Both the position numbers and the translations under genes were made by a program. Below the pieces are notes generated by a model that saw only the letters and a program-made list of their open reading frames with translations, had not been told where the DNA came from and did no database searches. From assembly GCF_035594765.1 (NCBI RefSeq), contig NC_085841.1, positions 158,333,574 through 158,397,573 of the forward strand: 64,000 bases of DNA, in the 5' to 3' direction. Below, piece by piece: positions 48,701-51,700 of this stretch (its first letter is position 1; each line of letters opens with the position of its first letter). The DNA is from Anolis carolinensis. Lineage: Eukaryota.

Positions 48701-51700
48701 CAACCTCGCCTTAGATCTTCCCCTTCCAGGGCAAAGATTTTCTTCTTGCCCAGTGTTACCCAGTCCTTAACCCATGCTAATGCAGCGGCCTCATAATAGA
48801 GTTGTATATACGGTAAACCCAATCCCCCTCGTCTTCTATCTGTGATGACTTATGGGCCATGTAGTCCCGTTCCTAGTACTGTTGTGACAGATGAAGAGGA
48901 AAACTTGGGTTTCCCACCGTTTCTGCCAGAATTGGAGCCCTTGCAGCTGCAGGATGTTTGCCCACAAGAAGTCACACAAACAAGCCTTGAGGAGAAATCT
49001 CCCCCATATTCTCGCCGCCTTTATTATAATCAAGATAGACACGCGCGGGAGGCAACTCGCCGAAGCGCCTGAATAGCTGCCAGGCAATTAGATGATTAAG
49101 TCTGGTTCCCTTGGGAAAGTTTAAGGAGTCCTGCATCTGGACAGTTTAGGTTTCGGTTCTTGTTCCCCAGAGAAAGTCTGCTTTGGCGGGAAAACAAGAT
49201 CCTATATAGATGCTTGGCCACAAGGATTCCTTGCGGAGTCAATTCGTCAGCTTCGGGAGTAGATTGTGTGTGGACTACGCTACTCCAGTTTCCAGGACCT
49301 TGCTCTCGTTTCCAGCCCTGCCTTGTTCCCCGGACCTCGCCACGGACCCTCGCCACGGACCCTGTTCTTGCTCCTTGCCTCTTGTTGCCTTGAATCAAGC
49401 CTTGTTTACCAAGAATCTAGTTTGCTTCCTAGCCTTGCATTAAACTCCATGGACTAAAGGACCTTGTCATCTCCCCTCACTTTGCTTGGCAAAGTGAGTG
49501 TTTCGGTTATTGGATTACAACTTTGGACCTTGGACTAATTTTGACCTTTCCTGAAAGGTCTACTTTTGAACTATTTCCTACACTTGCTTTTATTAACTTT
49601 ATATATTTCCTCAATAAAGATATTAGATAGATTCTGGCCTCTGTGTATGGTTATTGGTGCTCTGCAGCCTGGGTCCTGACACTATCATACTTTAGATTTT
49701 GATGTTTTATTCTTGCTTTTTTGTAATTCCATATGAAATTTCTTATGTCTTTCTCCCATTTGTTGATTGTGACTTTGGATCTTATTATTGGGATTGTCTG
49801 AAACAGGTAGAGTACTTCCGGTAAAACTTGCATTTTTATCACAGCTATCCTTCCTAAAATTGAGAGGTTTAGTTTTCCCCATCGTTTCATTTTTTCTTTA
49901 ATTTCAGACCACTTTTTGTCATGGTTATTTTTAGTAGTTGTGTGTTATTTGTTGTTAGCTCTATTCCCAGATATTTTACTTTTCTTACGATATTAATACC
50001 TGTCTTCTTCATTATTTCTTCTTTCTTTTCCTTTGGTACGTTTTTTGTCAGCATTTTAGTTTTTTCTTTGTTAATTTTAAATCCCGCCACCTCTCCATAA
50101 TTTTCTAGTTCACACCACCATTGGTTCCATTGGTTTGCCAGGTCTTCCATTATACATACCACGTCATCTGCAAATGCACATAATTTGTAGTTCTCCTTTT
50201 TCACTCTCAGTCCCTTTAGCTCTTCATTTTTCCTTATTCTTGTGAGTAAGACTTCCAAAGTCATGATAAAAATCAGGGGCGAGAGGGGGCAGCCCTGCCT
50301 AGTTCCTTTATGTAGGCTAATTTCTTTTGTTATTTCACCATTAACTATAATGTTTGCGTATTGATGGGAGTAGATGGCTTTTATAGAATAGTAACCCGTA
50401 TCCATTTCTTTCAACTGTTCTATTATAAAACTCCAACTGATTTTGTCGAAGACTTTCTCCGCGTTGAGAAATAGAAAGCCAACTTCTTTTTGCGTATTTC
50501 TGTCATAGTGTTCAATTGCGTTTATGATTGTCCTGATATTGTCTTTAATGTGTCGACCAGGTAGAAAGCCTGTCTGGTCTTGGTCAATCCGTTTTATTAA
50601 TATTTCTTTTAGTCTGGTTACTAATATACTCGTGAAAATTTTGTAATCAATATTCAGGAGTGATATCGGCCTGAAGTTCTTGACCTTTGTGTTGTCTGTA
50701 TTTTCCTTTGGTATAAGGGTTATATTTGCAAATTTCCATGTGTGTGGTATTTTTCTTTCCTCTAAAGCCCTGTCTATTACCTTTTTTTAGGGGTGTTATT
50801 AATATATCTTTAAAGACTTTATAGTATGTTGAGGTGAAGCCATCTGGCCCAGGTGCCTTGTTGGATAAGTTTTTAATTGCTCTTTGTATTTCCTCTACCT
50901 TTATCTTCCCATTTAATATTTCTCTTTGCTCTTCCATAATTTTATTTATCTCTTGTTTTCCGATGTATTGTTTTTTCCCTTTGAATTTTCTCGTTGGCGT
51001 ATAGGAGTCTATAGTATTTAGTAAATTGTTTTTCTATCTCTTTTTGTTTGGTAAAAGTTTTTCCTTCTTCTTCTATTTTATTAATATATTGTTTGTGTTT
51101 CTTTTGGGTCACCTTCCAAGCTAGCCATCTGCCTATCTTGTTTGCATTCTCAAAATAATTTTGCTTTATATATTTCAATTTTTTCTTTATTTCTTCTAGT
51201 TGTAGCGTGTTCAGTTGTTTTTTTTAAGTATTTCTAACTGTAGTTGTATTTTTTGTCTTTGGGATTTCTCTTTAATTTGGTATCAGACTCTGTAATTTCG
51301 TTTTCTATTTGTTTATACTCAGTTCCTTTTTTCATTCTTATAGTACTTTGTTGTATAAAAAGGCCTCTCGTGTAGGCCTTGCTTGCATCCCAGATGATGT
51401 CTATTGGTGTTTCCTTTTCTGTATTAAGTTTAGAGTATTTGTCTAATATTATATTATTTTTCTTTTGATCTTCTTGTCCTTTTATAAGATTATCATTAAG
51501 TCGCCATCTAAATGTCTTATTTCTGTCTCCCACATTTTCTATTGTAATTTCTAATGGGGCATGATCTGAGATTGTTCTCGGTAATATTTTGATTTAGCTA
51601 CTTTGGTCAATAGTTCTTTTGTCCCCCAGGCCATGTCTATTCGTGACCATGACTGGTGTCTTTCAGAGAAGAATGTATAATCTCTGTCATCTTTATGGGA

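Follow-up and report, generated by a model that had tools for sequence, protein, structure and literature searches.

The closest precedent for the arrangement described here is found in the group A CRM elements of plants, in which polyprotein coding extends through the polypurine tract (PPT) into the long terminal repeat (LTR) at the 3′ end and a putative integrase targeting motif is encoded by the LTR (PMC3059260). This study investigated two related solo LTRs, designated LTR1 and LTR2, in a stretch of 64,000 nucleotides from Anolis carolinensis (NC_085841.1, positions 158,333,574 to 158,397,573; hereafter the window), each of which opens with a dead relic of the C-terminal tail of a chromovirus integrase. 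Like CRM, the squamate elements related to these LTRs are Ty3/Gypsy chromoviruses in which pol runs through the PPT into the LTR, and the LTR termini are alike (TGATG in CRM and TGTGATG in the anole elements). In CRM, however, the LTR-encoded CR motif replaces the chromodomain, whereas the squamate elements retain the chromodomain and add a tail, predicted to be disordered, after it. The two LTR-encoded segments share no sequence similarity, and the hosts of the squamate elements are vertebrates.

In HMGN proteins, the sequence RRSAR is followed by L-S-A-K, and the domain continues in a Lys/Pro-rich segment downstream of this core. RRSARLSA is the nucleosome-binding core of HMGN; cryo-electron microscopy (cryo-EM) revealed that HMGN2 grips the H2A-H2B acidic patch through R23 and R26, which are residues two and five of RRSAR. 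S24 is a phospho-switch, whose phosphorylation is predicted by modelling to abolish binding, and HMGN-like motifs also occur in Dsup and yeast Dot5 (PMC12487698). This literature bears out the first-pass annotation of the window, which had recognized RRSAR as the acidic-patch anchor of HMGN. The intact anole tails contain the identical R-R-S-A-R core followed by the same [IL]-[SA]-A-[KR] pattern (I-A-A-K in the anole compared with L-S-A-K in HMGN). They differ from HMGN in that the motif lies at the extreme C-terminus of an integrase, is predicted to be helical, and has no match to Pfam HMG14_17.

Other chromatin tethers include the Ty5 integrase, which binds Sir4, and the chromatin-binding sequence of prototype foamy virus (PFV) Gag, which binds the acidic patch. 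In murine leukaemia virus (MLV), the integrase tail, which binds BET proteins, is described as a short C-terminal chromatin tether (PMC4027182). In each of these systems, as in the anole elements, the integration machinery bears a short, disordered peptide at a C-terminus that could tether it to chromatin. The MLV and Ty5 tethers use host adaptors (BET and Sir4) and that of PFV sits on Gag, whereas the anole tail would involve direct contact by the integrase together with its chromodomain. The Sushi/V-clade chromoviruses of fish and frogs resemble the squamate elements in possessing gag DUF4939, SH3_Tf2-1, a chromodomain, and, in many proteins, the junction G-G-[ST]/V-[TM] (the slash marks the junction); however, neither an acidic patch nor a basic end is present in the short tails of the fish elements, and the squamate tails are 4-8 times longer. 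The literature searched, an incomplete set with Repbase outside it, yielded no report of a retroelement integrase with a motif that is HMGN-like or binds the acidic patch.

The two solo LTRs and the features of their open frames are listed in window coordinates; L002 is a full-length Anolis element described below.

48841-49681, plus strand: LTR2, a solo LTR of 841 bp with TG..CA ends, flanked by the target-site duplication (TSD) CTATC at 48836-48840 and 49682-49686

48842-49069, plus strand: relic of the integrase C-terminal tail in LTR2, 76 codons from LTR base 2

49058-49069, plus strand: RRSA codons of LTR2 (CGC CGA AGC GCC), the first four residues of RRSAR

49070-49072, plus strand: in-frame TGA of LTR2 in the column where relatives have Arg, placed by DNA alignment with the L002 LTR

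49073-49099, plus strand: the remaining eight codons of LTR2 (IAARQLDD) and the stop TAA (49097-49099)

16377-18851, minus strand: LTR1, a solo LTR of a more distant family, flanked by the TSD AAAAT at 16372-16376 and 18852-18856

about 16986-18591, minus strand: a 5′-truncated CR1-like long interspersed element (LINE) with a reverse transcriptase domain and an (ATT)n tail, splitting LTR1

18593-18850, minus strand: tail relic of LTR1, which starts at LTR base 2, spans 86 codons, and terminates in RRSA (AGG AGA AGC GCC at 18593-18604)

LTR2 is inserted in an antisense fragment of a non-LTR (LINE) reverse transcriptase, as indicated by an RVT_1 match in the flanking open reading frame (ORF). 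After removal of its LINE, LTR1 comprises approximately 865 bp and aligns with LTR2 over the whole length. The blastn match between the two was confined to the last approximately 150 nt, on the U5 side (75% identity), and blastn detected no similarity between their coding parts. The first-pass annotation had reported that both LTRs read open from base 2; its boundaries, TG..CA ends, TSDs, and peptides agreed with our frame-2 translations, although the end that it gave for the LTR2 frame (49098) was one base short of the TAA.

We examined whether the open frames and their similarity exceed chance. Frames 1 and 3 of both LTRs close within 0-7 codons. The probability that frame 2 remains open over the length observed in LTR2 was 0.019 under a first-order Markov null; the corresponding figure for LTR1, 0.005, applies to a 110-codon frame built from one assumed LINE-removed join and does not cleanly estimate the chance for the 86 codons present. 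The Smith-Waterman score of LTR1 against LTR2 was 84 for frame 2 with frame 2, whereas the other in-phase frames scored 42 and 36 and 5000 residue shuffles gave 27.6 ± 5.2 (maximum, 56). At the aligned codons, the same amino acid was observed in 27 of 76, compared with 15.8 ± 2.7 under permutation of the matches, and 16 codons were synonymous but different, compared with 7.2 ± 2.5 expected (P = 0.0008). These codon tests are biased by their protein-guided alignment, and closer relatives were sought for that reason. The results revealed that the frame-2 similarity between LTR1 and LTR2 exceeds chance, and the synonymous differences in Arg and Asp codons previously pointed out between the two LTRs are real.

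The window LTRs hold the last approximately 85 codons of the integrase gene, and both copies are dead relics. Each breaks at the fifth residue of RRSAR, LTR2 at its TGA and LTR1 at the LINE junction, and both thus retain just RRSA of the core. The proposal that the TGA replaced an Arg codon was supported by the Arg found in this column in L002 and in the Anolis proteins P0002 and P0009. The TAA at 49097-49099 aligns with the column of the L002 stop codon TAG, the normal stop of the family. In LTR1, the LINE starts one base past the RRSA codons and is flanked on both sides by AGCGC, possibly its 5-bp target duplication. A second CR1-like LINE copy lies at 59611-60811 on the minus strand and is 75% identical to the LINE in LTR1.

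To determine whether selection acted on the protein, we used a frame-blind DNA alignment (MAFFT) of LTR2 with the 3′ LTR of L002. In LTR frame 2, the proportions of non-synonymous and synonymous differences (pN and pS) were 0.316 and 0.665, and the ratio of non-synonymous to synonymous change (dN/dS) was 0.25, an upper bound for the active lineage because LTR2 has also decayed neutrally since its insertion. In the frames shifted by 1 and 2, dN/dS was 0.89 and 0.90. The 258 coding nucleotides of this alignment contained a single gap of 6 nt, compared with 14 gaps in the remaining 580 nt (lengths 2, 12, 7, 4, 11, 1, 5, 1, 1, 1, 1, 28, 2, and 1). When synonymous differences were compared with non-synonymous ones by the Fisher test, P was 3.5e-5 for LTR2 and L002 and 9e-4 for LTR1 and LTR2; for LTR1 and L002, dN/dS was below 1 without reaching significance (P = 0.08). 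The R-R-S residues are encoded by CGC CGA AGC in LTR2, AGG AGA AGC in LTR1, and CGG AGG AGT in L002.

These findings demonstrate that LTR frame 2 keeps its length in multiples of three and is under purifying selection; selection on the protein had been argued in the first-pass annotation from the synonymous codon changes. The alternative that the frame has no function at the protein level, and that its similarity reflects common descent of LTR DNA together with DNA-level constraint on U3, would account for the homology of the LTRs along their length and for the constrained attachment (att) terminus. We nevertheless regard it as scarcely credible, given the contrast in dN/dS on and off frame, the lone in-frame gap in the coding part against gaps of mixed length elsewhere, the switching of Arg codons between CGN and AGR, and a frame that is open in three squamate lineages.

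We searched 1.84 billion representative proteins with a profile built from the LTR1 and LTR2 peptides and obtained three meaningful matches, all from A. carolinensis (P0001, P0002, and P0004). A word-based protein search with the 76-residue LTR2 peptide yielded no candidate. Further relatives came from word searches with P0004 and then with the L002 ORF; these were P0009 from Anolis and also P0007 from Rhineura floridana, P0011 from Vipera latastei, and P0013 from Crotalus adamanteus. In P0004, the chromodomain is followed by ..RGLEEGDS and then by LTR-frame sequence. The tails of P0002 and P0001 end in ..RRSARIAAKHSAD and ..RRSLSIAARNQAD, respectively, the final residues of P0002 being RRSARIAAK, and P0009 carries SH3, a chromodomain, and the full tail, with the end RRSARIAAKQLAD. 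The LTR2 tail shows 72% identity with the P0009 C-terminus and 50% with L002. A further profile match, P0003, is a tandem-repeat protein matched in five stretches and was treated as spurious; P0005 and P0006, which are chimeric or spliced gene models and depart from the tail, were not used as evidence.

Three full-length elements were identified, with coordinates given in each locus.

L002, A. carolinensis: LTRs at 4938-5843 and 10336-11241 (98.6% identity), TSD CTTAA; last ORF 9755-10588, crossing the 3′ LTR start at 10336, with 252 nt in the 3′ LTR

L001, R. floridana: LTRs at 5638-6210 and 10579-11153 (97.9% identity), TSD CTATC; last ORF 9644-10843, crossing the 3′ LTR start at 10579, with 265 nt in the 3′ LTR

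L003, C. adamanteus: LTR starts at 4118 and 9050 (96.4% identity), no clear TSD; last ORF 8001-9377, crossing the 3′ LTR start at 9050, with 327 nt in the 3′ LTR

In all three elements, the ORF encoding the integrase and chromodomain passes the PPT and continues for 84-108 codons into the 3′ LTR. The PPT/LTR junction reads GAT AG/T GT (Asp-Ser-Val) at all three loci; the boundary falls within the Ser codon, so that LTR base 2 is the first base of the codon after it. The integrase is therefore in frame with LTR base 2 in L001, L002, and L003, the check that had been suggested for the idea that Pol reads through the PPT into the LTR, and P0009 and P0004 conform to the same read-through. The Pfam domain order of L002 (gag DUF4939 and CCHC, protease, RVT_1, RNase H, H2C2, rve, SH3_Tf2-1, and Chromo) places it among the Sushi-like chromoviruses. 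In this element group, the chromodomain, upstream of the PPT, keeps all three aromatic cage positions. The window itself holds no internal region, and LTR2 is tied to the chromoviruses through the identity of its tail. The three copies are slightly decayed and were read as they stand: the frame of L002 is interrupted by a stop at 9752-9754 and changes around 8681-8958, that of L001 lies in several pieces, and the tail copy in the 5′ LTR of L003 is frameshifted.

These results demonstrate that pol has no stop before the PPT in this group of elements and that the first approximately 250 nt of U3 are coding in the mRNA, whereas the same U3 start is silent, promoter-distal DNA in the 5′ LTR. The position of the tail relative to the transcription signals was examined in LTR2.

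49203-49208, plus strand: TATA-like box of LTR2, downstream of the tail ORF

49613-49618, plus strand: AATAAA polyadenylation signal of LTR2 near the R/U5 end, in a block kept in L002 and LTR1

A TATA-like ATAAAAG occurs in L002 at a nearly equal LTR position (368 compared with 363 in LTR2). Because the TATA-like box and AATAAA both lie downstream, we infer that the tail ORF falls wholly in U3, and the tail would therefore reach the mRNA solely via the 3′ LTR. The first-pass annotation had also entertained a micropeptide, translated alone from the ATG at LTR base 5, and the conservation of this ATG (bases 5-7) in LTR1, LTR2, and L002 accords with that idea. However, TGTGATG is the LTR terminus and is constrained as DNA, the frame in U3 lies upstream of the TATA box and outside RNA initiated in the 5′ LTR, and in genomic RNA the frame follows on from pol without a stop between them. 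LTR3, another solo LTR in the window, and the snake LTRs lack this ATG and start with V-V. A separate micropeptide is thus highly improbable, and the frame is the end of pol.

Of the 119 chromodomain-containing proteins examined, 30 exhibit the G-G-[ST]/V-[TM] junction, and reading into the LTR looks widespread in this vertebrate group on the sequences compared. Fish chromovirus proteins (P0040, P0041, P0063, P0072, P0073, P0077, P0084, P0089, and others) read 13-21 residues past G-G-[ST]/V-T and end in (R)xPSPE[YF]. The fish SPE[YF] end may be related to an SPP[FY] block within the anole tails, and the tails of the squamate elements may have been elaborated from a shorter one.

The Anolis tails share several blocks. 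The start block is partly the att terminus TGTGATG and is followed by an acidic motif, [DE]3-4-N/D-[LMF]-G-F, which was observed in LTR1, LTR2, L002, P0001, P0002, and P0009.

48890-48913, plus strand: acidic motif DEEENLGF of LTR2

The other blocks are SPP[FY], D/E-R, and RRS[AL]-R-IAA[KR]. The RRSAR core, including both contact arginines and the serine, is intact in L002, P0002, and P0009 (RRSARIAAK), and the tails end in ..IAAKQETD or ..IAAKQLAD. The tails of Rhineura and the snakes have the same layout, acidic first and basic last, without the Anolis motifs.

A second reading places the functional core in the acidic [LMF]-G-F patch, which would mimic a host factor and recruit a host reader with a TFIIS N-terminal domain or the LEDGF IBD, in place of direct contact between tail and nucleosome. 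FxGF is an IBD-binding motif (PMC11740969), and the patch is kept in all six of the Anolis sequences in which it was observed. P0075, a protein from a Logan contig, moreover carries EEEDFVGF and SSSFRGF after its chromodomain, both of which fit FxGF. In the Anolis tails, however, N-L-G-F (LTR2), N-M-G-F (L002), and D-F-G-F (LTR1) lack the F-x-G-F register, and neither the Rhineura nor the snake tails contain the motif. The earlier suggestion of an FxGF-type motif thus failed on spacing, the sequences having neither E-x-E-x-F-x-G-F nor FxGF, and we consider recruitment through this patch improbable. The Logan contig L004 (ERR14657319) encodes a chromodomain integrase with a 198-residue acidic tail in which EEEDFVGF and SSSFRGF fit FxGF and the end is basic; the G-G-S/V junction signature was not visible in this contig.

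We used AlphaFold2 with a 41-sequence alignment to model the C-terminus of the L002 integrase. The SH3 domain and chromodomain were predicted confidently, residues 181-251, comprising the PPT linker and most of the tail, had a predicted local distance difference test score (pLDDT) below 50, and the last 24 residues of the tail were helical with a pLDDT of approximately 84. The tail is thus predicted to be disordered save for a helix over its last approximately 24 residues. AlphaFold 3 is reported to fail on the HMGN2-nucleosome complex (PMC12487698). Pfam searches with the LTR1, LTR2, and LTR3 peptides and the intact tails revealed nothing relevant, HMG14_17 did not match the tail at E ≤ 10, and a phmmer search of the PDB with the L002 tail returned no match at E ≤ 10.

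On the basis of these findings, we propose that the integrase, which runs from an SH3-like domain through the chromodomain and the PPT (Asp-Ser-Val) into the tail encoded by the 3′ LTR, could use RRSAR as HMGN and Dsup use their arginine anchor, to engage the acidic patch of H2A-H2B. A nucleosome would in that case be gripped by the intasome at two places, with the chromodomain on the methylated H3 tail and the integrase tail on the acidic patch. Judged from sequence resemblance, this anchoring of the acidic patch in concert with the chromodomain is plausible but falls a little short of what we would call probable.

Several findings weigh against it. The similarity to HMGN spans just 9-10 residues, and the Lys/Pro-rich continuation of HMGN is absent, the tail ending 6-8 residues later in an acidic end. 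The RRSAR region is predicted to be helical, and cryo-EM of HMGN2 resolved RRSAR along the acidic patch (PMC12487698). In LTR1, the residue past RRSA is unreadable at the LINE junction, and RRSAR cannot be asserted for this family because the next residue is Ala or Lys, and not Arg in either reconstruction, depending on whether AGCGC is a target duplication. Every DNA copy examined is decayed to some degree. Generic clusters of Arg and Lys, with no RRSAR, form the ends of the Rhineura and snake tails and resemble classical nuclear-localisation signals.

The last of these points leads to the main rival, in which the tail is a selected part of the integrase whose basic end serves as a nuclear-localisation signal or a nucleic-acid-binding patch, the acidic part being a solubility or autoinhibitory spacer, and no tethering to the acidic patch takes place. 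The integrases of yeast Ty1 and Ty3 possess C-terminal nuclear-localisation signals. The Arg/Lys clusters are typical of such signals, and the conservation of an acidic region followed by a basic one extends further than that of the exact motif. By contrast, the Anolis families keep the exact HMGN core and [IL]-[SA]-A-[KR] rather than a K-K/R-x-K/R cluster, and this string is kept with different codons in three families. We therefore regard a localisation signal or nucleic-acid patch as rather unlikely, although a serious contender. As a whole, the explanation that the frame is an LTR-encoded integrase tail of a chromovirus and a candidate acidic-patch tether, the window copies being dead relics, is the best available and is probably correct, with considerable room for doubt. 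Regarding the interpretation in the first-pass annotation, Pol read-through and selection on the protein were thus upheld, and the strict FxGF motif and the micropeptide were not.

The window also contains a solo LTR unrelated to LTR1 and LTR2.

55757-57126, minus strand: LTR3, a solo LTR of 1370 bp with the TSD CAAAT

LTR3 likewise carries an open frame that begins at its base 2; the 170 codons, running from 57125 to 56616, would encode an acidic peptide, with RIRRGRK near the start, a duplicated 15-residue unit ending in (A/V)VW, and the V-V start of the snake tails; no relative was found among the fetched proteins. The 5-bp TSD and TG..CA ends are present in all three solo LTRs of the window, which contains no stretch of N. 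Exons on the plus strand at 52440-52500, 55306-55445, 57290-57420, and 57497-57580 encode Gly-X-Y repeats with many GFPG triplets, and the window falls within introns of a collagen gene, possibly one resembling type IV.

Within the R region of LTR2 (49476-49498), the most conserved block of the LTR contains a hairpin (-13.8 kcal/mol) whose 10-bp stem is perfectly paired and whose loop has 3 nt. The L002 copy of this hairpin (LTR position approximately 674-698) has an 11-bp stem, the matching extra base on each arm being a compensatory change. A GTGAGT resembling a splice donor lies directly 3′ of the hairpin, and P0008 and P0004 read through the hairpin block. The sequence after the 5′ LTR starts with GTTTG.. 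rather than with the TGG of a tRNA primer-binding site (L001, 6211-6240; L002, 5844-5870; L003, 4722-4750). Self-priming occurs in elements of the Tf1/sushi group, and by analogy the GTTTG.. start may indicate self-priming here.

Beyond the chromodomain, how LTR retrotransposons choose insertion sites in vertebrates is largely unknown, and a selected, LTR-encoded tail with the exact HMGN anchor offers a concrete hypothesis open to testing with peptides. The coding start of U3, approximately 250 nt, bears on the annotation of LTRs, on dating by LTR divergence, and on the interpretation of "conserved non-coding" LTR sequence. The authors of the HMGN and Dsup cryo-EM study predicted an "untapped realm" of users of this motif (PMC12487698), among which a mobile element would be an unexpected member. 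Squamate chromoviruses may have recruited the start of U3 to encode protein and, in anoles, fashioned it into a mimic of the HMGN anchor that permits two-point reading of the nucleosome, a scenario that we advance tentatively and hold somewhat less likely than its contrary. If it is true, the tail would be the first transposon-encoded acidic-patch binder of the HMGN type in the literature searched and would parallel, in animals, the CRM tail of plants.

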